Assembly: GCF_001194135.2 (NCBI RefSeq)
Contig: NC_068981.1
Span: 189,771,806-189,835,805, forward strand
DNA: 64,000 nt
Reading direction: 5' to 3'
Source: Octopus bimaculoides
Taxonomy: Eukaryota
The notes beneath the pieces were generated by a model. It was not told the DNA's origin and did no database searches. It saw only the letters and a program-made list of their open reading frames with translations. Below, in pieces: positions 12,915 through 61,417 of this stretch. Position numbers and translations under genes: made by a program. How positions within the stretch are numbered: the first letter of the stretch is position 1; each line of letters starts with the position of its first letter.

Positions 12915-15177
12915 GGTGCACAGAGTGCAGAAGTTGTTCTAGCCTAATTTTGGGGTGCTGATTTCAGATACAAAACCAGTTTTCGCTCATCACCTCTAGT
13001 TTTTGAGATATACATTATTATGATTTTGCGATAATTCATGTAGCCATATATAAATATGATCAATTTTTATTTTGTTTTCCAGATTTTTGTGATACATATG
13101 ATACATGTCTCTACAATGGCATCAGGCACTTCAAAGCACTGAGGATGCTACATGTGTGGGGATTTCACTACAGTTGCACAACACCGGACAATTAAATCCC
13201 TCCTGAGAATTGCTTACTTTCATTATTTTGATTGCAAAATTATTTTGATTATAAAATTGGAGATTACGACAAATCCTGGGCCCCACACATCTGTTGTAAA
13301 CTCTGCTACAATAGACTAACTGCATGGTTTAACAGCAAGAAAGCAGCCTTCAATTTTGCTGTCCTGATGGTCTGCAGAGAGCCACGAAGCCATGCAGATG
13401 ATTATTACTTTTATCTAACAAATATTACAGGTTTCAAGNNNNNNNNNNNNNNNNNNNNNNNNNNNNNNNNNNNNNNNNNNNNNNNNNNNNNNNNNNNNNN
13501 NNNNNNNNNNNNNNNNNNNNNNNNNNNNNNAAATATCCCAACCTTTCCTCAGCTATGAGACCTGTTCCCCACTCAGATGATCTCCCTGTCTTTACACTCT
13601 CAACAAATAAGGACTTTCTTCCTTCATCAAGGGAAGAAATGCTTTCAGGGGAAGATTCTGCCAAGTTGATCTCTTCTGAAGACAATATCTCTGTTTATTC
13701 AGGAACAAGTGGCAATGAGCCCCACTGGATCACGCAGGAAGATCTCAATGACCTCGTCCATAATTTGTATCTATCTAAGCAGCAGTCAGAGCTCCTGGCA
13801 TCCTGGTTTAAGCAGTGGAATCTGGTTTAAGCAGTGGAATCTGGTCAAGATGTAAGGATCACCTGTTTCAGGACACGGAACCAGGACTGCTTCATTCTTT
13901 GACATAGCATAGAAAACAGGTTGTGCTACTGCACAAATGTCTCTGGTTTGTTCACCTTCCTTGGTTTCACACACAATCCCTCAGACTGACGTCTTTTCAT
14001 AGACTCTTCCAAGTGAAGTCTGAAAGCTGTGCACTCCTGTACAATGGAAATAATACCCCAGCATTCCTATTGCCTACTCAGCCCATTTGAAGGAGTTGTA
14101 TGACCATATGGAACTCCTTTTGGAAGCTATCAAGTACAAACAGTACCAGTGGAATCTCTGCGGGGACCTCAAGGTCATTGGGCTCCTTATGAGTATGCAA
14201 GTAGACTCCACAAAGTACTGTTGCTTTCCCTGTTCCTGGGACAGTCGGGCTATGTCCAAGCACTACAAGCAGAAGGACTGAGGATCTAGGAGCACTTTCA
14301 TGCCTGGTGAACACAGCGTTCAAGAAAATCCTCTGGTGGTCATGAACAAGGGGCTTCTTCCTCCTCTTCTTGGTTTAACGAAGAATTTCGTGAAGGCCAT
14401 GGATAAAAATGGTGCTGTCTTCCAATACTTGTTTCCCAGTTATGAGTTCTGCTAAGCTCAAAGAGGGAATCTTCTTCAGACCTCAGATCTGAGAGATGTT
14501 GAAGGATAAGGACTTTGAGGAGCTTCTTACCTTAAAGGAACTGAGTGTAGAAAGCATTTAAGTCAGTCTGCCATGGCTTCTTTGGTAACACACAGGTACT
14601 AGGTTACCAAGAGTGTATCAATAAGTTGTTACAGTCTTATGAGGATATGGGATGCTAAATGACACTAAAAATTCACTTTCTCTACTCCCAACTCAACCTC
14701 CTCCCTCCAAAGCTCGGAGCAGTAAGGGATGAGCATGGAGAAAAGTTCCACCAAAATGGAGAGCAACTACCAAGTCAAGTGGAATCCCAGCATGATGGGG
14801 ACATTGCTGGATGCTCCTGTGTGACATCCCAGGGGCAAAGTACAAAAGATCATCCAAAAAAACTCACTTCTACATGTCTGCTGTACTATGATTTTGTGTG
14901 TATTGTATTATCCAAGTAATTTAGTTCAATCAATGTTCTGTATCTATGCTGGGTTTTTTTCTGTAATATGCCTTTGTAACAGATGAAATAAACACATTAT
15001 ATTTTGAACTTATATACAGTATAATTAGAATAGGATATGTGAAAGCAAAATGCTAGAAGCAATAGAGCGAAACTGTTCAGGAAATTGAATTCACCACATC
15101 AAAGTTTGTAAACAAAAAAAACAAACACCTATTCATATCCTTGCCTCAGAGCAAAAAATTTTTTTCTAAACCAGTGT
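12915..15177 (+). mobile_element. Chapaev3-like (CMC superfamily) DNA transposon, near full-length, disrupted transposase ~13116-14880
   Basis: Motifs CYMCGDF, GDYDKSWAPHICCKLC, REPRSHADDYYFYLTNITGF, QWNLCGDLKVIGLL, TKYCCFPCSWDSR, LGAVRDEHGEKFHQ; 3' end '...tttttctaaaccagtg|taa'; 5' subterminal 'ttttggggtgctga'. Family assignment from remembered motif patterns. Confidence 0.75.
13439..13530. other. Assembly gap (92 N) inside the transposase
   Basis: N run. Confidence 1.
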
Positions 15178-17539: not shown

Positions 17540-17835
17540 CATGTAAAAAGCACCTTTTCAGCGTTGAGCCTCACGGAAGCAATGACAAATGACTGAGACC
17601 TTTGGCAATAAGCTGTGCTTAAGTAGAAGACTCATCCGGTCAGTGACAGATACTGGCTGGTGGCATGTAAAAGCACCTATTACACTCTCAGAGTGGTTGG
17701 CATTAGGAAGGGCATCCAGCTGTAGAAACCATGCCAAATCAGATTGGAGTCTGGTACAGCCCTTCAGCTTACCAGCTCTGGTCAAACTGTCCAACCTATG
17801 CCAACATAGACAACAGACGTTAAATGATGACGATG
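17540..17835 (+). mobile_element. RTE ORF2 C-terminus plus 3' UTR
   Basis: Translates to LSLTEAMTND*DLWQ*AVL, then the 'ggaagggcatcc' UTR and (ATG)n tail. Confidence 0.75.
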
Positions 17836-18602
17836 ATTATTTAAAGAGAAATACTAGAACTATGGTAAAACTGGGATGTTGTAGAAAATACATCCCAGTG
17901 TCAAGTATGAGGTAAAATTGGCTGTTAATGTCTAACCTTTTGTTAAATGTTGTAATAGAAAGGTAAACTCAGTGTTCAGTAGCAGAGAAGAAAAAAAAAG
18001 GAAAAAATTGTAAAAGTCAGTAGGCAAAAATTGCAGACCAGATACTATCAGAAGTGAGGAAATGTACATTATGTTGAACATTAACTGAATAATAATGAAT
18101 ACACGCTGAGAATGACACATCAATGGAACAGACAGTTTAGATATGAAAGTGGATTTAGCAGGAGATAAGAATTCCTAGTGTGTTGTGTTGTATCAGTAAA
18201 TATCATTTGACAGAATAAATAGAGAAAAATCCAATGTACATTTACGACAATAACAACATTTTTTTTTTGCACCATATATCAAAGGAAGCTCTTAAGTAAA
18301 TGGTAATGTTTACAACACAAATCTCATTACTAGATAAGGAGTGGGGGAGGTGTTCTTGACAACTACATCTTTGTCATCAATAGCCTAAAAACCAATATTA
18401 TGAAGAAAATATTTTGCAATAACATGTAAGAAATCCTACAAAGTGGCCTAAGCACATTAAATTCTATACAGTAAACATATTTAAGTAGTTATTTGGGAGG
18501 ATTTGTTAAACTTCAGTGATTTCACCTCAACTACCAAATGTCATCACTACAATGGCTAGAGGTTTAAGAAGACTAAAACTTGCATGCACATGTATGTGTA
18601 CG

Positions 18603-19400: not shown

Positions 19401-19439
19401 AGTTTTAGGACCTCACTCTCATTGAAACAGACAGGTTTT

Positions 19440-21250
19440 CTCAAGCACAAGGAATTGCCAGCCATCTCAGTCCTTTGTTGTCAGCTTCGTGAGGGTCAAC
19501 ATTCTGAGATCAGCCATCACTATTTCATCCCATGTCTTCCTGGATTTCCCTTTTGCTCAGGTTCTATTCACTTAAACAACTGACACTTCTTTATACAACT
19601 GTCCTTATCTCTACATATCACATGACCACATCAGCACACTCTTCTTGTACCCAATTCTTCACACAACACATTTTGACTTCATCATATAAGCACACTGATG
19701 TTTTACATCCAATGGACCATACAGGCTTCATTATTTTCCTGTCTTTGCATACCCTCTACATTCAGGGCCAATATCTCACTACCATGTAACATTGCTGTTT
19801 GTACACAAGCATCATACAATCTACCTTTTATTACTAACATAGGTAATAGCTCTGAATTTTCTCCATCTGCTTCTTATTCTAGCAACTATACTTTTGGAAC
19901 ATGCTCCTCCACTGCTAATTTGGTGACCTAAGTAAGAGAAACTATCTACTAACCCCTAGAAAATTTCCTGAGTACTCAAGAAAATCTATTTCCCATATGT
20001 TTTTAGCTTTTATTGCTTCTGTGCATCTGCCACATGTAGAGTCTACTTTTCTACAATCTTATTGCACCTTTTGTGTCCATATCTTGCACTGAGTACACCA
20101 TGTGGAATTTCTTTCTACACCTTCCCTACACATCACACAGAACCATTTTCCAGAAAGGAGCAGACTAGACTCTTGTTTGTTTTCCTGCTAAGTAGAACTT
20201 TGATTTTTGCTAAGTTAACTTTTAGATCCTTTGAATCCAAGTTTTGCTGCCATACCTGGAATTATTTTTTTAACTCTACAACAGATTCTGATAAGAACAA
20301 GCTCATCAGAATATATTTCCCAAGGGCCACCCCTCTATTATGCATAAGAGGGATCTGAGAACTAAGGTCAGATGAGCTATACACTAAATCAGCTGTTGTA
20401 CTTGTTGGTAGCAACACCTCTGTACATGGAATTGATGAATGGCTTATCAGAGCCATCTAAGCCTAGCTTCCTCAGCAACTCCAAATCACAAAGAACCTTG
20501 TTAAAGGTCTTCTCAAAGCTGACAAATGCCAAATACAATAACTTAAGTTTAGTTAAATAAGACCCCACTTATTAGGTTCATGTTGAGAAGGACCACTTTC
20601 GCCCATGTATTCTCCACATTCAGTAGCCTGTCATAGAAGCACTTCCATGCCACTTTCTTTCCAGAATCACTATCTACCTACAACACATTTCTCACCACTG
20701 GCATCTCAGTTGTCTCTGATACATTCTTTTGCGATCTCATACTTTTGATTCTCATACTGTGGAACTTTGGCAAACATCTTCCTTTCTGCTTCTCTCCTCT
20801 AACTCCCTAATATGATTCTCTGCTACACCCATCATTCCAATATTTTCAAGCCTATCTCTTTGCTCTGTTTTCTTCACTGTTCTACCACCACATCACCCTC
20901 GGTCTTGATGGAACTTTGCACTAGCCACAGACTTGGACCAGTACCCTCAACAGGCTGCTGTGAAGGAACTTCCAGTTCTCTTCTATGCTATACATCTCTA
21001 TCTCCTCTGCCTTCTTATCAAATACTTCAACTTGTACTTCTCTAAATTTCTGACTGCTTCACTAAATCTTCCATAGCTTTCTCTTCCAGACTGATTTGTG
21101 TCTCTGTGTCCTTCTAACCCTAAGTTTGAAGTCACTAACTACTAACCTATGTAACCTTGTACATTTCTCACTCAGGAAGGACTTTACATTCACAAACATC
21201 TGTCTATCCCATTTTTTAGTGAGAATGTAACCAGTCTGGCTAGTGTGCCC
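19440..21250 (-). mobile_element. Decayed RTE-clade LINE ORF2 (RT to C-terminus)
   Basis: Minus translation LYLAFVSFEKTFNKV (~AFVDLEKAFDRV), GPWEIYSDELVLI (~PWELLYADDLVL), RKTWDEIV..DLRML. Confidence 0.8.
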
Positions 21251-21860: not shown

Positions 21861-22379
21861 TGTAGTAGATGAGAAGGGATAATACATGATACATATGAGT
21901 TGAGGAGTAGGTGTTGATTGGCACTACAGGAAGGTGAAGGGCAGCAAGATAAAAAGAGATGACGTATGTGGCAGAGGTACAGGCAACAAGAGTGTGATTA
22001 ACAAGAAGTTGAAAGAGTTTGTGCAGGGAGTAGTGCATGAAGAGAGTGAGAGATGTATGGTGATATGGACACAGGAAGTGGCTTAGTAGGAAGGGAGAAG
22101 TAATTTGGTGGCCTATAAGGGTGGAGAGATCAATGTAAAGTATGATTGAAAAGGACAATGTATGAATGAAGGATGGAAATTAATTGAAGCAGTTCAGAGT
22201 AGAGATAAATATAACTGGTATCATAGAAAAGATGCAGCTATACTTTCATTTGATTACAGCAGTAGAATACTGCAGTTGACAAGAGATAGATCAATGATGG
22301 AGAATAAAAGGGTAGAGGGAAAATCAGGTGAGGTGCTCAAATGTATATATATATATATATAGGCATTTTGATTCTAGAT

Positions 22380-23050
22380 TCTCAGTTTTACCAAGATAGT
22401 TGGCCTTCTTGAGCACATCTCTCTTCCACAAGTTTCATCCACGCTAAGAGATAAACACTTTATACAGCTATTCTCATCCATATGCATCACATGGCCATAC
22501 CAGCACAAACTTCACTCTTGCACAGTACATCTGAATCTGTTTACATGTAATTTTCCTTGCAACATGTTTGCTCTTTATCATAAGCACACTGATGTTGCAC
22601 ATCCAACGGGGACAATAGCTTAATTCCTTTCTCACCTTTGCATGTTCTCTGCATTGAGTCTACATCTCACTGTCATGTAGCAGAGTTATTTATACACAAA
22701 CATCATACAATCTGCCTTTCACTTGGAAAGAAACTTTTTCTTACCAACAGAAATAACAACCTATTCTTATTCTCGCAGCTATATTTTCAGAACAACTTCT
22801 CCCATTGCTAATTAGGTCAGCTAGATAACTACAACCTCTAGAGATTCTACTGGGCATTTGATAAAATCTACTTCCTATGCACTCTTAGTGATTATTGCTC
22901 TTGTACATCCACCACATACAAAATTTTTGTCTGTTAACCTGTGTGTAATATCACATGCACCTCTTGTGTGTTCACTATTCGTACTGTGCACATCATATGT
23001 AATTTCTACTCATTCCTTATCTATATAATGAGCAAGGCTCATTCCCTGAC
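22380..23050 (-). mobile_element. Second decayed RTE ORF2 C-terminal fragment
   Basis: Parallels ~19560-20150 (shared 'catcatacaatct.cct', 'aagcacactgatgtt..acatcca'). Confidence 0.65.
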
Positions 23051-23655: not shown

Positions 23656-24602
23656 NNNNNNNNNNNNNNNNNNNNNNNNNNNNNNNNNNNNNNNNNNNNN
23701 NNNNNNNNNNNNNNNNNNNNNNNNNNNNNNNNNNNNNNNNNNNNNNNNNNNNNNNNNNNNNNNNNNNNNNNNNNNNNNNNNNNNNNNNNNNNNNNNNNNN
23801 NNNNNNNNNNNNNNNNNNNNNNNNNNNNNNNNNNNNNNNNNNNNNNNNNNNNNNNNNNNNNNNNNNNNNNNNNNNNNNNNNNNNNNNNNNNNNNNNNNNN
23901 NNNNNNNNNNNNNNNNNNNNNNNNNNNNNNNNNNNNNNNNNNNNNNNNNNNNNNNNNNNNNNNNNNNNNNNNNNNNNNNNNNNNNNNNNNNNNNNNNNNN
24001 NNNNNNNNNNNNNNNNNNNNNNNNNNNNNNNNNNNNNNNNNNNNNNNNNNNNNNNNNNNNNNNNNNNNNNNNNNNNNNNNNNNNNNNNNNNNNNNNNNNN
24101 NNNNNNNNNNNNNNNNNNNNNNNNNNNNNNNNNNNNNNNNNNNNNNNNNNNNNNNNNNNNNNNNNNNNNNNNNNNNNNNNNNNNNNNNNNNNNNNNNNNN
24201 NNNNNNNNNNNNNNNNNNNNNNNNNNNNNNNNNNNNNNNNNNNNNNNNNNNNNNNNNNNNNNNNNNNNNNNNNNNNNNNNNNNNNNNNNNNNNNNNNNNN
24301 NNNNNNNNNNNNNNNNNNNNNNNNNNNNNNNNNNNNNNNNNNNNNNNNNNNNNNNNNNNNNNNNNNNNNNNNNNNNNNNNNNNNNNNNNNNNNNNNNNNN
24401 NNNNNNNNNNNNNNNNNNNNNNNNNNNNNNNNNNNNNNNNNNNNNNNNNNNNNNNNNNNNNNNNNNNNNNNNNNNNNNNNNNNNNNNNNNNNNNNNNNNN
24501 NNNNNNNNNNNNNNNNNNNNNNNNNNNNNNNNNNNNNNNNNNNNNNNNNNNNNNNNNNNNNNNNNNNNNNNNNNNNNNNNNNNNNNNNNNNNNNNNNNNN
24601 NN
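23656..24602. other. Assembly gap (947 N), followed by a (GA)-rich tract
   Basis: N run; the long X ORFs here are artefacts. Confidence 1.
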
Positions 24603-27589: not shown

Positions 27590-27815
27590 TCATCATCATC
27601 ATTTAACATCCATTTTCCATGCTGGCATGGGTTGGACAGTTTGACAGAAGCTGGTAAGGCGAGGAGCCACACCAGGTTCGATTGTCTGCTCTGGCATGGA
27701 TTCTACAGCTGGATGCCCTTCTGAATGCCAACCACTTTTACAGAGTGTACAGGGTGCTTTTTTTAGGCATCTGCACCGGTACTTTTTATGAGGCACTAGC
27801 ACCATATTATTGTAG
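27590..27815 (-). mobile_element. RTE 3' UTR copy
   Basis: (CAT)n then 'ttaacatccattttccatgctggcatgggttggac...ggatgcccttc'. Confidence 0.75.
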
Positions 27816-28113
27816 GAAGCAAAACAGGGCAGTCACAACTGCAGAGCATTTTTATTACTGTACTTGCTCGCATATAAGATACACACTTGCATAAAATACA
27901 CTATTTTACAAACATATTTTGTGGAAAAAAAGCAAATTTAGTATGTTTCATCATACACTTACTGAAAGATATTTTAAAGAAGTTTTATAGAGAAAAATGT
28001 TGATTCTCTGCATGTAAATGCAATGCTGTAACCAGTATACTGGAATAAAGTATGAAACCATAAATTTATCATTCATTATATGAGAACTGTATTTTAACTT
28101 TATCTTCTTTCAG

Positions 28114-30880: not shown

Positions 30881-31040
30881 GTCATTAAATTTTACTCTAT
30901 TATTCCAATGATGAACCAATATTGTGTTTAAAATCTGTTTGGAAATACGACTTGGGTAAGGTAGTGGGGCAACATAGAGTCTTGGAACAAACTCCATCTT
31001 TCCCATGCATTGCATTCATTTATCACAGATGCTTTTAACA

Positions 31041-31198
31041 TACACAATTTAACATGGTGTATGGTGTATTAAAATACACAATTTAACATGGTGTATGGTG
31101 TATTAAAATACACAATTTAACATGGTGTATGGTGTATTAAAATACACAATTTAACATGGTGTATGGTGTATTAAAATACACAATTTAACATGGTGTAT
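31041..31198. repeat. Perfect 34-bp minisatellite, 4.6 copies
   Basis: Unit tacacaatttaacatggtgtatggtgtattaaaa at 31041, 31075, 31109, 31143, partial 31177. Confidence 0.95.
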
Positions 31199-31429: not shown

Positions 31430-31665
31430 ATAAGGTGGTGAGCTGGCAGAAATGTTAGCACGCTGAGCAAAATGCTTAGCGGTATATTGCCTGCTGTTAC
31501 ATTCTGAGTTCAAATTCCGCTGAGGTTGACTTTGCCTTTCATCCTTTCAGGGTCGATTAAATAAGTACCAGTTACACACTAGGGTCGATATAATCGACTT
31601 AATCCGTTTGTCTGTCCTTGTTTGTCACCTCTATGTTTAGCCCCTTGTGGGCAGTAAAGAAATAA
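31430..31665 (+). mobile_element. Full-length SINE B (tail type 3)
   Basis: 'aaggtggtgagctggcagaaatgttagcacgc...ttctgagttcaaattcc...gccccttgtgggcagtaaagaaataa'. Confidence 0.85.
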
Positions 31666-32811: not shown

Positions 32812-33020
32812 ATTTGCGTGTCTGTGTTTGTCCCTGCACCATCNNNNNNNNNNACAACTGATGTTGGTGTGTTTACGTCCATGTAACTTAATGGTTCTGC
32901 AAAAGAGACCGATGGAATATGTACTAGGCTTACAAAGAATAAGTTCTGGGGTCGATTTGTTCAACTAAGGGTGGTGCTCCAGTATGGCCACAGTTAAATG
33001 ACTGAAACAAATGAAAGAAT
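32630..33020 (+). mobile_element. SINE A copy (contains 10-N gap at 32844-32853)
   Basis: Matches family A. Confidence 0.85.
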
Positions 33021-33934: not shown

Positions 33935-34147
33935 AATGATAACCCCTTCTACTATAGACACAAGGTCTGAAATTTGGGGAAGGGGACTAGTCGATTACAT
34001 CGACCCCCAGTGTTTCACTGGTATTTAATTTACTGACTTTGAAAGGCAAAGTCAACCTCGGCAGAATTTGAACACAGAATGTGAAGATGGATGAAATGCC
34101 GCTAAGCATTTCGCCTGGCACGCTAATGATTCTGCCAGCTTGCTGCC

Positions 34148-34234
<87 letters not shown>

Positions 34235-34440
34235 GTAATAGTTTCAAATTTAGATATGAGGCCAGCAACTTCGAGGGATGGAGTAAATGGATTACTTCAA
34301 CCCCAGAACTCAACTGGTACTTATTTTATCGACTCTGAAATGTAAAGTCGACCTCGGCAGAATTTGAACTCAGAACACAAAGACGGATGAAATACCACTA
34401 GACATTTTGTCATGAGTGCTAACAATTCTGTACACTGCCC
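33935..34440 (-). mobile_element. Two SINE B copies (different tails) joined by a ~85-bp (TAA)n
   Basis: Core 'gtc.acctcggcagaatttgaac.caga' twice; (TAA)n 34149-34237. Confidence 0.85.
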
Positions 34441-35984: not shown

Positions 35985-36466
35985 ACTGAGAATGAAAATA
36001 ATTATTTCAAATTTTTGTCACAAGGGCAGCCTGGGGGAGGTGGGGATGAGTTGATTACATCAACCTCATTGTTTGACTGGTATTTATTTTATTGACCCTG
36101 AAAGGATGAAAGGCAAAGTGAACCTCAGTGGAATTTGAACTCAGAATGTAGCGATGGGTGAAAAACCACTAAGCATTTCATCCAGCATGCTACTGATTCT
36201 GCCAGTTTGCCACTATACTGAGAATGAAAATAATCCTTCCTATTATAGGCACAAGGCCTGAAGTTTTGTGGGAGGGGACTAGTTGATTACATCGGCCCCA
36301 GAATTTCACTGGTACTTAATTTATCGATCCTGAAAAGTTGAAAGGCAAAGTCGACCTTGGTGGAATTTGAACTCAGAACATAAGGGCAGATGGAATACCG
36401 CTAAGCATTTTGCCCAGCATCCTAACAACTCTATCAGCTCACTGATTGACTGAGAATGAAAATAAT
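35985..36466 (-). mobile_element. Two SINE B copies bracketed by three copies of 18-bp actgagaatgaaaataat
   Basis: 18-mer at 35985, 36217 and 36449. Confidence 0.85.
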
Positions 36467-39777: not shown

Positions 39778-40310
39778 TTCATCATCATCATCATCGTTTA
39801 ACGTCCGCTTTCCATGCTAGCATGGGTTGGACGATTTGACTGAGGACTGGTGAAACCGGATGGTAACACCAGGCTCCAGTCTAATTTGGCAGAGTTTCTA
39901 CAGCTGGATGCCCTTCCTAACGCCAACCACTCAGAGAGTGTAGTGGGTGCTTTTACGTGTCACCCACACGAAAACGGCCACGCTCGAAATNNNNNNNNNN
40001 NNNNNNNNNNNNNNNNNNNNNNNNNNNNNNNNNNNNNNNNNNNNNNNNNNNNNNNNNNNNNNNNNNNNNNNNNNNNNNNNNNNNNNNNNNNNNNNNNNNN
40101 NNNNNNNNNNNNNNNNNNNNNNNNNNNNNNNNNNNNNNNNNNNNNNNNNNNNNNNNNNNNNNNNNNGCCACGCTCAAAATGGTGCATCTCATGTGCCACC
40201 CGCACAAGAACCAGTCCAGGGGCACTGGCAACGGTCTTACTTGGCTTGCCGGGTCTTCTCACGCACAGCACATTTCCAAAGGTCTCGGTCAGTAGTCATT
40301 ATTGTAGTTT
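39778..40310 (-). mobile_element. Young RTE 3' end spanning a 176-N gap (39991-40166)
   Basis: Near-identical to 49050-49320; 'gccacgctc.aaat' on both sides of the gap. Confidence 0.8.
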
Positions 40311-40602
40311 AATTATTGGTTACCAAACATGAAAGATCATCATTTTATTCTCATGACATCTTAAGTCATAAAAATGAAATTATAAGAATTATTAGAATAT
40401 TGTAATGCCATCTATGTCTGCTAATTGTTGGATGGTATTAAAGTGTGCACATCACCAAAAACAGTGTAGTTATAAACAGTGAATCTTGAAATAATCTTAT
40501 GAATATTAATGAGGATTATGAACTAGAAATGGAATTTTTAAAAATTCTCTTCTCATAAATTTTATAAACACAAGTAAATAAACAAGGAAAATATAATAAT
40601 AA

Positions 40603-41294
40603 TGATGAACTCTCATGGCTTCTAACCAAAACTGATTGGAAGCATTAACATGTACATGTTTTGTCTTGGTGTAAAAGATGAGCTACAATAAATATTCTGC
40701 TCAATACCACAGATTAGCTTGTCAGCTGCTTGACCTTAACCAGTTGAGCATGTTTCTTAGTAGCTGACGATGTGTATGCCAGGCAGTGGCTCTCATGGCT
40801 TCTGATCTTAACTGATTGGAAGTGTTATCATGTACATGGGCTACAGCAAATATTCTGCTCAATACCACAGATTTGCTTGTCAGTTGTTTGACCTTAACCA
40901 GTTGAGCATATCCCTTGGTGGCTGATGATATGTGCATCTCTGATCACAAGCAGAAGTAGTGGGGGAGCATCATAGCCATGTGCTGAGAGGAATTTTTTGA
41001 GGTTTGAATAATTCAGCTCGGGAAACATGGGTGTTTCGTTCAACATCCTTAAACAACACTTATTCAAGGACTGTTTGAACATAATGGGCTACTCAGCCTG
41101 AAGAAAATTCTAACTGGACCCCACCTGCAAGGTCATGCACTGTTTATCTTGATATGAGATCACCATGTCACACACATATGGTTGTGATGCATGTGCCTGG
41201 CGTCCCTTTATTAGACGGTTAGTCATGATGGGTATACTGAGCTTCATATATTTTACCCCAGTGTTACTGATGGCATACCCTGCTATCTCACTCA
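40603..41294 (-). mobile_element. Family F: full copy (~40780-41294) plus a truncated 3' copy (~40603-40780)
   Basis: Reverse complement of 57199-57737; begins at (TAA)n 41294-41345. Confidence 0.75.
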
Positions 41295-41296
41295 AT

Positions 41297-41344
<48 letters not shown>

Positions 41345-41345
<1 letters not shown>

Positions 41346-41830
41346 TCTTTCTATTAAAAGCACAAAGCCTGAAATTTTGGGAGTGGGTCTAGTTGATTTT
41401 ATTGACCCCAGTGTGCAATAGGTACTTGTTCTATCAACTCCAAAGGATAAAAGGCAGAGTCAACCTTGGAAGCATTTGAACTTAGAACATAAAGCTGCAA
41501 ATAATACCACTAAGCATATTATCTGATGTGATAAGAATTTTGCCCACTTACCACTTTAATAATAACATTTCAGATTTAGGCACAAGGCTGACAATGTTGA
41601 GGAGAGAGTTTTAATTGATACCATTGACTCCAGTACATGACTGGCATTTTATTTCAAGTCCTGAAAAGATAAAAAACAAAGTTGATCCCATTGAGATTTG
41701 AACTCAGAGTGCAAAGAGTCAGAATGATAACAGTTTCTAATTTAAGCACAAGGCCAGAAACTTTGAGGGGAGATTAGTCAATATCATTGACCCCCTAATC
41801 GCAACTGGTTCTCTGTTTTATTGCTCCTGG
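41345..41830 (-). mobile_element. Three stacked diverged SINE B copies
   Basis: Tail motif 'gcacaa.g' at ~41360, ~41580, ~41748, separated by TAA-rich linkers. Confidence 0.7.
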
Positions 41831-49049: not shown

Positions 49050-49320
49050 TCATCATCATCGTTTAACGTCCGCTTTCCATGCTAGCATAGGTTGGACGAT
49101 TTGACTGAGGACTGGCGAACCAGATGGCTGCACCAGGCTCCAATCTGATTTGGCAGAGTTTCTACAGCTGGATGCCATTCCTAACGCCAACCACTCCGAG
49201 AGTGTAGTGGATGCTTTTACGTGCCACCGGCATGAAGGCCAGTCAGGTGGTACTGGCAACGGCCACGCTCAAAATGGTGTATTTTATGTGCCACCTGCAC
49301 AAGGGCCAGTCCAGGGGCCA
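49050..49320 (-). mobile_element. Young RTE 3' end
   Basis: Near-identical to 12140-12352 and 39778-39960. Confidence 0.85.
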
Positions 49321-54104: not shown

Positions 54105-54325
54105 AAGATGGCAAGCTGGCAGAATCGTTAGCATGCTGTACGAAACGCTTAGCAGTATTTCGCCTGTCGTTATGTTCTGAGTTCACATTCTGCTGAGGTC
54201 GATTTTGCCTTTCATCCTTTCAGGGTTGATAAATTAAGTACCAGTGAAGAACTGGGGGCCAATGTAATCGACTAGTCCCCTCCGCCAAAATTTCAGGCCT
54301 TGTGCCTATAGTAGAAAGGTTATTT
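54105..54325 (+). mobile_element. Full-length SINE B (tail type 1)
   Basis: 'aagatggcaagctggcagaatcgttagc...ttcaggccttgtgcctatagtagaaagg'. Confidence 0.85.
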
Positions 54326-54800: not shown

Positions 54801-56053
54801 TTAGGTTGTTTCGCACGAAATGTCGTATTTGAAAGTTAACAATAAAATGTTTCAGAAGTGTTAGAAGAGAACTGATTCATTTAATCAAGGTATGATCCAT
54901 GTTCATTTAGGACGTTTATCCAACGTTTCTCTGTATCACATATTTCATCTTTAAAAAAAAATTCATCTTTTGCTGTGATAAACTGTCCGAATGCTTCAAT
55001 TGCCTCTTCTCTATTTAAGAATGTTTTATTACTTATGAAAAGCTCAAAATGCTTAAATAAGTGATGATCCGTAGGAGAGATATCAGGGGAATAGGGAGGA
55101 TGTTGCAAAATTTCATAATTCCAGTTTTGCAACTTTTGGACTGTAGCTTGAGGAGTGTGAGGGCATGCATTGTCATGGAGCAAAACTGGGTTATCTCTAT
55201 TCACTAGTCTGGCCTGCTGCTTTTCAAATTTTCATGCATACAATCAATTTCCTGGCAATACGATGTTGCTGTTACCATTTTTCCTTGTTGTAAAAATGAA
55301 TAATGAATAACTCCCTTCGCAGAATACCATAGAGTGACCACTAACTTTTTAGGGTGCAATGGTAGGTTTGGGTAGTGTTTAGGTGACTCTCCCACATCTA
55401 ATCACTGTCCTGTTCTCCTGCTGTTGTCAAAGAGTACCCATTTCTCATCACAAGTAATGATTTGATGCAAAAATGGCCTTTTTCAAGTCAAGAAAGTAAT
55501 AAGGAACACACTTCGAGGCATCTGTTTTTTTAAATCACATTCAGTTGATGTGGAACAAAGCTATCTGTTTTCTTGACTTTTCCAATTTTTTAAAGTGTCC
55601 AAAAACAGTTGTGCGAGATGTTTGGAGTTCTGATGAAAGTTTCCGAACCTTTGTTCTTGGATTTTGTTCAACCAAAGCATTTAATCCATCATGCCGAACA
55701 ACTAATTTTGGCCTACTTCTTGGCATATTTTCAAGGATATCATCTCCTGAACGAGAGCTTTGGAACCATCTCTGAACAGTTCTGATGTCAACAAAACCAT
55801 TACCAAAGGTCCGCTTGATATTCCATAGAGCTTCTGCAGCAGAGTGACCCAGTTTGTACTCATACGAGAAAATCACTCAACATAGTTTGGTTGTTATCAT
55901 TTTCATAAGGTCTGTGGGTATGAATTTTGTAAACCAATATTGTTGGGAAAGAAAAAAGAGTCAAGATTAAATGCAAGGTATACATCATTGAGTTTTTAAA
56001 TGACTGAAATAACAAGGAATTAAAAATGTGACATTTCATGTGAAAAAACCTAA
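54801..56053 (-). mobile_element. Full-length mariner element (1253 bp)
   Basis: TA|ttaggttgtttcgcacgaaatgtcgtattt ... aaatgtgacatttcatgtgaaaaaacctaa|TA; ~30-bp TIR with 5 mismatches. Confidence 0.95.
54881..55906 (-). pseudogene. Mariner (DD34D) transposase, inactivated by stops and frameshifts
   Basis: N-terminal HTH (YEYKLGHSAAEA..RTVQRWF), LHPKKLVVTLW, LLHDNACPH, HPPYSPDISPTDHHLF; ATG at 55906 followed by an early TGA. Confidence 0.92.
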
Positions 56054-56734: not shown

Positions 56735-57198
56735 TTTTAACCAAGCTGGCAGAAATGTTAGCTATAAAAAAAAAGACCTCATAGTATTTCTTCTAGCTCT
56801 TTACATTCTGAGTTCAAATCTTACCAAAGTCGTCTCTACACTTAATTTCTTCAAGGTCAATGAAATAAAGTACCAGTCAAATACTATGTGGCAAGTACTA
56901 ACACTCTCCCCTCAAAACTGTTGACTTTGTGCCTAATTCATAAGGCATTATTATTATTATTATTACTATTAAGGCAGTGAGCTAGCAAAATCATTAGTAT
57001 GCTGGGTGAAATGCTTAGTGATATTTCGTCAGCCACTACATTCTGAGTTCAAATTCTGCCAAGGTCAACTTTGCCTTTCATCCTTTCGGTGCTGATAAAT
57101 TGAGTACCAGTAGAACACTGGGGTTGATGTAATCAACTAGACCACTTCTCACAAATTTCAGGCTTTGTGCTTTTAGCAGAAAGGATTATTATTATTAT
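56735..57198 (+). mobile_element. Two tandem SINE B copies joined by (ATT)n
   Basis: Core 'ttctgagttcaaat' at ~56806 and ~57041; ATT tails at ~56948 and ~57185. Confidence 0.8.
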
Positions 57199-57735
57199 TG
57201 AGTGAGAGAGCAGTACATGCCATCAAAGTGACACTGGGGTAAAATATGCAAAGCCCAGTATACATACCCATCATGACTACCCATCTGATAAGGGTACACA
57301 TGCATCACAACCATATGTGTGTGATATGGTGATCTCATATCAATATAAACAGCACATGATCTTACAGGTGGGGGCCCAGTTATAATTTTCTTCAGGTCAA
57401 GTAGCCTATCTTGCTCAAAAGGTCCCTGAATAAGGTTTGTTTAAGAATGTTGAGCAAAATACCCATGTTTCCGAAGGTGAATTATTCAAACCCCAAAGAA
57501 TTCCTCTCAACACATGGCTATGATGCTCCCCACTACTTCTGCTCATGATCAGAGATGCACATATCGTCAGCCATTGAGGGACATGCTCAACTGGTTAAGG
57601 TCATGTAGCTGGTACTGAGCAGAACATTTGCTGTAGCCCATCTTTTATACCAAGACAAAGCAATGTACATGATAACACTTCCAATCAATTAAAACAAGAA
57701 GCCATGAGAGCCACTGCCTGATACTGCATCAGGGC

Positions 57736-57737
<2 letters not shown>
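57199..57737 (+). mobile_element. Family F, ~540-bp non-tRNA element flanked by (ATT)n on both sides
   Basis: (att)n|tgagtgagagagcag ... gcatcagggcat|(tta)n; no A/B box seen; second copy at 40780-41294. Confidence 0.75.
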
Positions 57738-57775
<38 letters not shown>

Positions 57776-58479
57776 GCCGAATTGTTAGTGCATCAGACAA
57801 AATGCCTATTGGTATTTTTCTTCTAGCTCTTCACTTTCTGAGTTCAAATTCTGCCTAGGTTGACTTAGCCTTTCACCCTCCTGGGGTTGGAAAAGTAGGT
57901 GTGATGATGATAATGATGGTGTTCTGTACTGCACATCAGGGTGGCTTGAAGGTCTCAGTAGAATATCAGTTTTTTTATTTCTCCAAGAAATTACTAAACC
58001 ATTTTGAGAGAAGAGGCTTCCTATGTGGAATGAGACAACTGGGCACAGCTGGCTTCACATTTAAACTGGTTAAGCAACAATACTTTTTGAGTTGGAGGCA
58101 AACACACACACATACACATTTGTGTGTGTGTGTATGTGTGTACTTGGAAATATACAGAAAGGAGAGGTAGAGGGAGGGAAAGGAGAAAAGAGAGGGAAAA
58201 GGAGAGTGGGGTAGAAACAGTGGAGGGGAAGAGGAGTGGGAGAGAGGAGGAAGAAAAAGATATAATTCATTTATGTAATATGATTGACATGAATATGTTC
58301 CCTTTCTTCATATAAATAGAAAAATAAGCTCATATGGTGAGAGAGAGAGAGGAAAGGAGGGAGAAAACAAGAAATTAGAGGCATTAAAACAGGTGTCAAG
58401 TAAGTCAACATCGAATCAGTGTAGCATCCAATACACAGAACATCTCATACCCCTACCCATGACCTTTCTCAGAGTGCAA

Positions 58480-60502: not shown

Positions 60503-61270
60503 CATCATCATCATCATCATTTAACATCCATTGACCATGCTGGCATGGATTGGATGGTTTGACGAGAGCTCGCAAGCTGGGGTGGAGGGCTGCACCAAAC
60601 TTCAGTCTGATTTGGCATGGTTTTTATGGCTCTATACCCTTCCTAACACCAACCCCTTTACAAAGTGTGCTGGGAGCTTTTATGTGGCACTGCACTAGCA
60701 CTTTCATGTGGTGCCACATGAACACTTTTACGTCACACCACATGAATGCTGTTACGTGGCATTGCATGGGCACTTTTATATGGGGCAGCATGGAAGATTT
60801 TACATGGCACCACATAGGTGCCTTATGTGGCACCAACACAATTACTTTACACCATCAGAGGGACTGGTCTTAACATTTCTGCTGCAGAGTATAGGTCTTC
60901 TGCAGTACAGCAAGGTGTTAGGTATATCAGTCTTTGGTCATGTCACCTGAAAGGTTATGCATCCTGATGTCATTCTTCAGCACTTCGCCCCATGTCTTCC
61001 ACTTGCATGTGCTCCATCTGCTTCGAGAGATAAGCACTTCTTTATGGAGCTGTCGGCATCTATCCTCATCATTTGACCAAACCAGTGCATTCTTCTCTCT
61101 TGCATCTAGCAACCAATTCCTCTTATGCCTCACTTCTCTCTCAATGTACTACCACTCTGTCGAACAAGTACACTTACTTTACACATCCAATAGAGCATAC
61201 TAGCCTCATTTCTTTCTAACCTTCGCATACCCTCTGCACATCTCACTACCATGTAGAATTGCTGTCTGTA
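60503..61270 (-). mobile_element. RTE ORF2 C-terminus plus 3' UTR with expanded ~21-bp minisatellite (~60675-60845)
   Basis: KTWGEVLKNDIRMHNLSGDMTKD; repeated 'gcacttttacgtggcaccacat'-like units; (CAT)n tail. Confidence 0.75.
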
Positions 61271-61386
61271 TACAATGCATCATACTATTCTTAATCTAGT
61301 TGCCATCTTATTCTAACTACCACACACTGTGCATTCTCCCCCACCGCCACTACTACTAATTATTATTATTATTATTATTATTATTA

Positions 61387-61417
<31 letters not shown>

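Follow-up and report, generated by a model that had tools for sequence, protein, structure and literature searches.

The window analyzed here, a 64-kb stretch of the Octopus bimaculoides genome (contig NC_068981.1), contains several head-to-tail arrays of retroposons, in which short interspersed elements (SINEs) of a type named SINE B and a longer element, family F, follow one another on the same strand, mostly with ATT repeats at the junctions. Adjacent elements are in excess and co-oriented, neighbors are independent copies, and one pair records two insertions at the same ATTATT site, marked by an 18-bp target site duplication (TSD). In our reading, the arrays are probably the products of separate, successive insertions of ATT-tailed retroposons into ATT sites, chiefly their own tails, by target-primed reverse transcription (TPRT). 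All counts and tests reported below come from this one window, which is AT-rich (27-40% G+C).

Copies of SINE B and F were located by nhmmer, using models built from the copies of the window; ATT tracts were obtained from Tandem Repeats Finder (TRF) and from a scan of the window for ATT tracts. SINE B is represented by about 19 copies of about 210 bp, short, dispersed and without open reading frames (ORFs), and comprises several families, indicated as B-I, B-II and B'. B-I ends in ..CCTATAGTAGAAAGG-ATT and B-II in ..CCTAAATTTGAAAY-KTTATT; B' features the head and core common to SINE B, with a different 3' region, ending in ..AATAAAGAAATAAG or ..GGGCAATAAAGAAATAAG, without ATT repeats. Family F is a 538-bp non-coding retroposon, with stops in all frames and an ATT tail. 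Its 5' end (GAGTGAGAGAGCAG) is fixed: the copies at 57200-57737 and 41293-40784 align end to end from an identical first base.

Two elements were considered neighbors when separated by a gap of 100 bp or less. By this definition, 11 of the 23 SINE B and F elements lie directly behind another one in the same orientation, and none has a neighbor in the opposite one. When elements were placed at random 20,000 times, without overlap and with random strand, same-orientation neighbors averaged 0.41 and never exceeded 5 (Poisson P ~1e-12); the co-orientation of all 11 neighbors has a probability of 5e-4. A first-pass annotation, made from the sequence alone, had proposed that each insertion leaves an ATT tail favored by the next one, and had named the absence of enrichment and random relative orientation as findings that would speak against it: at the scale of the window, the adjacency is in clear excess over random placement, and the orientation is anything but random. 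Eight of the 11 junctions are made of ATT-type repeats only, and 5 of the 7 tracts with at least four ATT units sit between two co-oriented SINE B or F elements. Downstream members are often 5'-truncated, starting at model positions 13, 47, 47 and 61, and at 368 in F.

Two arrays are large; their members are listed in Table 1. The first, at 56743-57898, includes, all on the + strand, a SINE B, (ATT)n, a second SINE B, (ATT)5, F, (ATT)12.7 and the 5' part of a third SINE B: sequence reading and nhmmer agree with the order and single orientation initially described at 56735-57895. The last SINE lacks about 12 nt at its 5' end and its whole 3' part, and the sequence downstream of 57898 has no other match within the window. 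The second array, at 41839-40610 (-), opens with two 5'-truncated SINE B and a full one, followed by (ATT)n, a full F and then an F that lacks its 5' part. It had been reported, at 40603-41830, as the same order inverted: the array is real, and the succession B-B-(ATT)n-F does recur, but the two arrays differ after F. The truncated F at 40783-40610 replaces the last 25 nt of the neighboring one, with a TGCA microhomology at the junction.

Smaller arrays are found as well. Two SINE B copies said to be joined by (TAA)n at 33935-34440 are indeed present at 34441-33944 (-), with a link of about (ATT)30, and three more co-oriented pairs, at 36466-35985, 699-300 and 33629-33454, are added here. The pair at 699-300 consists of B' elements, joined at their own non-ATT tail AAAGAAAT. 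The one at 33629-33454 (-) combines two SINE B heads, both partial (model 9-112 and 21-76), arranged body-to-head with no tail between them; it is counted among the 11 adjacencies, and is not tail-mediated. It may be a head-to-tail pair, whose junction was later deleted.

Within the arrays, neighbors turn out to be poorly related. In a multiple alignment, adjacent SINEs are 59-68% identical to each other, and the same copies are 75-89% identical to copies located tens of kb away; adjacent copies are never mutual closest relatives, and belong to different subfamilies. The truncated F at 40783-40610 shows 75% identity with each of the other two F copies, and contains a 23-bp stretch absent from the neighboring F. 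Corresponding segments of the two large arrays, moreover, have diverged to different extents: transversions reach 9.3% in B-II and 6.4% in B-I*, against 2.9% in F (Fisher p=0.003), and identities amount to 77%, 78% and 88%, respectively (p ~0.001-0.002). Since divergence is unequal among segments, a single duplicated block is excluded. Segmental tandem duplication, the third finding that the first-pass annotation had set against its own proposal, is thus not what the arrays display, with neighbors less alike than distant copies and divergence uneven.

The pair at 36466-35985 is the most informative one. Three perfect 18-bp copies of ATTATTTTCATTCTCAGT, at 36466-36449, 36234-36217 and 36002-35985 (-), precede, separate and follow two SINEs, which are 67-78% identical and feature different 3' variants. 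The first SINE carries a B-I 3' end (87-89% identity with the B-I copies at 54109 and 48878); its partner is closer to B-II (62-65%) than to B-I (45-58%). Perfect TSDs, combined with SINEs of different subfamilies, indicate two independent insertions at one site, using the same staggered cuts. The first six of the 18 bp are ATTATT, which occurs at 0.16% of the position-strands of the window; as the TSD copy upstream of the first SINE carries it too, ATTATT was present in the empty site. A search for TSDs around all units gave a clear result only for this pair (18 bp, three copies); an 11-bp candidate was found at 31435, and none was detectable elsewhere.

The same pair is the natural starting point for a different explanation, according to which the arrays derive from local tandem or segmental duplication (by unequal crossing-over or replication slippage), or are assembly artefacts, for example haplotypes that were concatenated, or microsatellites at which a short-read draft was wrongly joined. 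At 36042-36466, a period-232 repeat with two equally long units is called by TRF; the window contains five N runs, marking assembly gaps (2577-2676, 13439-13530, 23656-24602, 32844-32853 and 39991-40166); and the 95-bp (ATT)n tract is difficult for short-read assembly. Against this, adjacent copies are of different subfamilies and are not closest relatives, the three TSD copies are perfect although the SINEs differ by 22-33%, and spacers at most junctions measure only 10-38 bp, well inside one read. For three 18-nt copies to stay unchanged after a tandem duplication diverged by 22%, the probability is about 1e-3. Duplication or misassembly is therefore considered very improbable.

Table 1. Members and junctions of the arrays, by window position; coordinates on the - strand are given in descending order.
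Feature	Position	Strand	Evidence and remarks
SINE B, B-II, nearly full length	56743-56946	+	nhmmer model 7-201, E=2.5e-19; 3' end ..CCTAATTCATAAGGC; first in the array
(ATT)6-ACT-ATT-A, tail of SINE B-II, joining it to SINE B-I*	56947-56971	+	sequence, ATT tract scan
SINE B, B-I*, full length	56972-57184	+	nhmmer model 2-212, E=5e-65; 3' end ..GCTTTGTGCTTTTAGCAGAAAGG
(ATT)5 tail and junction	57185-57199	+	sequence, ATT tract scan
Family F, 538 bp	57200-57737	+	end-to-end alignment with 41293-40784
Pure (ATT)12.7, F tail and junction to next SINE	57738-57775	+	TRF, 100% matches
SINE B, 5' part only	57776-57898	+	nhmmer model 13-131, E=5.5e-21
SINE B, B-II, 5'-truncated at model position 105	41839-41734	-	nhmmer; first member of the array
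SINE B, B-II, 5'-truncated near model position 47	41722-41567	-	nhmmer; TAT microhomology with preceding tail TGTTATCATT
SINE B, B-I*, full length	41555-41347	-	nhmmer E=6.7e-55; preceded by tail TGTTATTATTA
AATT(ATT)14-AATTATTATT, tail and junction to F	41346-41294	-	TRF, ATT tract scan
Family F, full 5' end	41293-40784	-	alignment; last ~25 nt and tail missing at the junction with the next F
Family F, 5'-truncated	40783-40610	-	alignment, model 368-534
SINE B, B-II-like, full length	34441-34242	-	nhmmer E=2.8e-54; 3' end ..AAATTTGAAAC
~(ATT)30, tail and junction	34241-34147	-	TRF, 30.7 copies
SINE B, B-I, full length	34146-33944	-	nhmmer E=1e-60; followed by degenerate ATT tail 33943-33911
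Double hit at one site: TSD, SINE B-I (36448-36235), TSD, SINE B-II-like (36216-36003), TSD	36466-35985	-	
B' head-to-tail pair: full copy, directly followed by one truncated at model position 47	699-300	-	nhmmer; tail ..AATAAAGAAATAAG

A mechanism for the successive insertions may be outlined as follows. At least three non-autonomous families, SINE B-I, SINE B-II and the 538-bp F, end in (ATT)n and would depend on the enzyme of a long interspersed element (LINE). This enzyme would nick the bottom strand beside ATT repeats; the freed end, ...AATAAT-3', would anneal to the RNA at its (AUU)n tail and serve as primer for cDNA synthesis, so that the new copy would necessarily land downstream of the old one and co-oriented with it, often in 5'-truncated form. 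Because each insertion leaves a new 3' ATT tract, earlier copies would be preferred sites for later ones; with their own tails as the commonest nick sites exposing AAT, arrays would grow by successive co-oriented insertions. At 36466-35985, a nick made in the bottom strand where the TSD has its left border would expose ...AATAAT-3', exactly complementary to an (AUU)n tail. Both the 5' truncations and the short microhomologies at junctions (TAT at 41722, TGCA between the two F copies) are typical of TPRT.

Feed-forward growth on ATT tails, the core of the initial proposal, is thus in line with the independence of the copies, their strict co-orientation, the ATT-tract junctions and the double hit at an ATT-containing site; the latter, however, is a plain ATTATT and not a microsatellite. 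As the microsatellite-joined arrays carry no recognizable TSDs, their stepwise growth is a likely reading, drawn from the fact that their members are independent copies and from the precedent of the double hit. The B' pair, joined at a non-ATT tail, further indicates that the rule is not ATT-specific: what matters appears to be that a tail resembles its own target, rather than a special property of ATT. The solitary B' at 31435-31665 (+) features the candidate 11-bp TSD, ATAAGAATGAT / ATAAGATTGAT, which resembles the B' tail. A 34-bp minisatellite (31035-31198 (+), 4.8 copies, 99% identity) is located 240 bp upstream of this element.

A number of observations weigh against successive insertion. 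The missing TSDs are the first of them, as a single pair carries one, and both units of that pair are exactly 232 bp long, which at first sight looks like a duplication. TPRT explains neither the loss of the 3' part from the SINE at 57776-57898, possibly due to a deletion, nor the body-to-head pair at 33629-33454. An (ATT)20 tract at 61359-61416 (+), with one T-run interruption, is occupied by neither SINE B nor F. ATT tracts inside the arrays, of 6-95 bp, tend to exceed the tails at their ends, of 3-33 bp (one-sided p=0.046), and both full-length F copies follow B-I* copies of one sub-subfamily, the pair at 56972-57184 and 41555-41347 having 9 derived sites in common over 216 columns, the highest number for any pair. 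No partner LINE was found in the 64-kb window, and the sample is a single window of a draft assembly with gaps.

The long internal tracts and the missing TSDs are both accounted for if each array was written in one step: within a single TPRT event, the reverse transcriptase would end or stall on one ATT-tailed RNA and jump to the (AUU)n of another one, producing a heteropolymer of SINE families. End-to-end template jumping is documented in vitro for the reverse transcriptase of R2, a relative of R4/Dong. Jumping onto a whole RNA tail would produce longer spacers than genomic priming inside a tail, all members would be co-oriented, downstream members might be 5'-truncated while upstream ones keep full tails, and no internal TSDs would be expected, as seen in the microsatellite-joined arrays. 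The internal 18-bp TSD of the 36466-35985 pair (36234-36217), in contrast, cannot arise by jumping; no single TSD is found around any whole array, and three families must be co-expressed. We regard one-step synthesis as unlikely, and it is rather improbable that the microsatellite-joined arrays in particular were laid down by template jumping in a single retrotransposition event. If true, it would give arrays such as B-I*-(ATT)n-F a ready route to new composite retroposons.

The recurrence of closely related B-I* copies before F suggests a further possibility, that B-I*-(ATT)n-F, and perhaps also the B-II before it, formed a composite unit, which arose once and was then spread by read-through transcription or segmental duplication. 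The order B-II, B-I*, (ATT)n, F is indeed found in both large arrays (2 of 2 loci). Against such a history speak the uneven divergence among the segments (Fisher p=0.001-0.003), the linkers of 15 and 53 bp, and the different flanks and outer members of the two arrays, and we think it improbable. Even then tail targeting would be needed, since the composite unit would itself have landed twice in a B-II tail. The divergence values are also suggestive of an age order along the arrays, B-II first, then B-I, then F; this order is contradicted by the B-II-type head that follows F at 57776.

Successive insertion calls for a partner LINE. None is present in the window, where no ORF of at least 120 aa exists besides low-complexity sequence and N runs; among stop-to-stop frames of at least 70 aa, only a mariner remnant and other DNA-transposon-like pieces are found, and no reverse-transcriptase remnant is recognizable in the window. 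B-I/B-II and F have no common 3' sequence beyond the ATT repeats, so that the enzyme should recognize little beyond the tail, or several partners should be involved. Two types of LINE come into question, Dong/R4 and RTE. Dong targets TAA repeats in moth, mosquito and snail (Biomphalaria) (PMC3812793); its insertion at (TAA)n, as a member of the R4 clade, is credited in that review to Xiong & Eickbush 1993 and Kojima & Fujiwara 2004, and Waldo, Mino, Kibi and Koshi are listed with it among microsatellite-specific LINEs (PMC3812793). In Octopus vulgaris, Dong-R4 is listed as the class with the most recently active LINEs (PMC13282606), and the O. bimaculoides repeat library includes a full-length Dong (PMC9115989). 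RTE elements have 3' untranslated regions (UTRs) made of simple repeats and TSDs of 6-20 bp, and generate microsatellite families (Tay et al. 2010, PMC2887409). The RTE expressed in octopus carries a microsatellite as its 3' UTR, and in O. bimaculoides the LINE with evidence of recent activity is the RTE (PMC9115989).

Insertion inside (TAA)n/(ATT)n repeats, as expected of Dong/R4, is found here, on the very same motif; Dong is present in a mollusc, Biomphalaria, and Dong/R4 has been reported in octopus genomes (PMC9115989, PMC13282606). Dong is a reasonable candidate partner; unlike Dong, the elements of the window are non-autonomous, and their one clear target is a plain ATTATT with an 18-bp TSD, rather than a microsatellite. 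No published TSD length was found for Dong/R4. An RTE-type partner fits at least as well: the ATT tails and the 18-bp TSD correspond to the simple-repeat tails and TSD range of RTE, and RTEs and the SINEs they mobilize likewise feature di- or trinucleotide repeat tails, TSDs of 6-20 bp, many 5'-truncated copies, and microsatellites with repeated flanks. RTE insertion, on the other hand, is described as not sequence-specific, and the head-to-tail clustering seen here is absent from that description. The nick-and-anneal step is a proposed one, and RTE-type and Dong/R4-type elements are both candidates for the source of the enzyme.

Arrays built by insertion onto a preceding tail are known from other systems. 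Zepp of Chlorella and HeT-A/TART of Drosophila telomeres form head-to-tail, co-oriented arrays by successive transposition onto the previous tail. These are autonomous LINEs, located at chromosome ends or joined at poly(A) tails, whereas the octopus arrays are interstitial and consist of SINE-like elements joined by ATT. A closer parallel is offered by Alu, mobilized by L1: about 19,000 Alus have entered the A-rich tract of an older Alu in sense orientation, which is explained by priming of the T-rich bottom strand on their poly(A) tail (Levy et al. 2010, PMC2836564). In both cases sense insertion occurs into a tract that mimics the tail, with priming (proposed, for the octopus elements) by the nicked bottom strand, and produces head-to-tail pairs, whose TSDs are short or invisible when the tract is long. 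In the octopus window, by contrast, (ATT)n takes the place of poly(A), the unrelated B-I, B-II and F use the same one, and 11 of 23 elements are involved in just 64 kb. No paper describing an ATT-tailed, SINE-level version in cephalopods was found in a limited literature search.

The arrays are thus an ATT version of the established principle by which a tail mimics its target, as in Alu/L1 and in microsatellite-specific LINEs, and leave the understanding of retrotransposition unchanged. SINEs reportedly make up about 12% of octopus genomes (PMC13282606). If the pattern of the window holds genome-wide, a large part of this load would lie in self-seeding clusters rather than at random sites, and tail seeding would explain much of the local clustering of repeats and of their orientation bias. 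It would also explain the repeated flanks of ATT microsatellites, a problem for marker design and for short-read assembly. The same process would supply raw material for dimeric and composite SINEs, and reveal, in the genome itself, which targets the partner LINE prefers.

Some further features of the two element types are worth reporting. The SINE B alignment shows a B-box-like GAGTTCAAATTC; no tRNA is predicted in the window by ARAGORN or Rfam, and Rfam gives no family match at all. A stretch of about 45 nt of SINE B (..ACTTTGCCTTTCATCCTTTCGGGGTCGATAAAT..) recurs in otherwise unrelated SINE-like repeats from metagenome contigs (L001-L011, for example L011 6537-6587 and L003 2615-2660), presumably host DNA of other invertebrates. 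This recurrence indicates that the central domain of SINE B is deeply conserved; it may belong to the Nin-DC/Deu type. When metagenomes were scanned with a 20-nt SINE core, all that came up were SINEs of other animals with the common domain of about 45 nt, and a literature search with the core sequence string found no paper. As for F, the idea of a ribozyme-processed deletion element derived from Dong is unsupported: Rfam gives no match to an HDV-like ribozyme at its 5' end, and the predicted fold of this end is no better than that of shuffled sequences (z=-0.4). A search for homologues of a pseudo-protein read from F found none.

The (ATT)20 tract at 61359-61416 cuts short a repeat, whose copies at about 19430-19990 and 22320-22880 run past that point: a natural end of the preceding repeat is therefore ruled out as its origin. 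The 2.7 kb upstream of the tract contain no reverse-transcriptase-like frame. The N run at 39991-40166 lies about 440 bp past the end of the inverted array.

Other repeats and open frames are scattered along the window; exact look-ups of three of its ORFs gave no match. A mariner-type transposase remnant, in at least three frames, is located at 54881-55876 (-); its nearest database relatives are annotated as SETMAR or transposase, with PF01359 or PF13358. Contigs reached through mariner homologues are unrelated, and contain neither SINE B nor F. An abundant repeat family features a recurring open frame (..TRLQSDLAEFLQLDALPNANHSESV..), found at 17561-17836 (-), and at 27658-27891, 39850-40332, 49105-49320 and 60535-60870 (+). 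Finally, a short open frame at 14087-14281 (+) includes the motif ..LCGDLKVIGLL..TKYCCFPC.., which we take to be reminiscent of domesticated or transposon-derived proteins.

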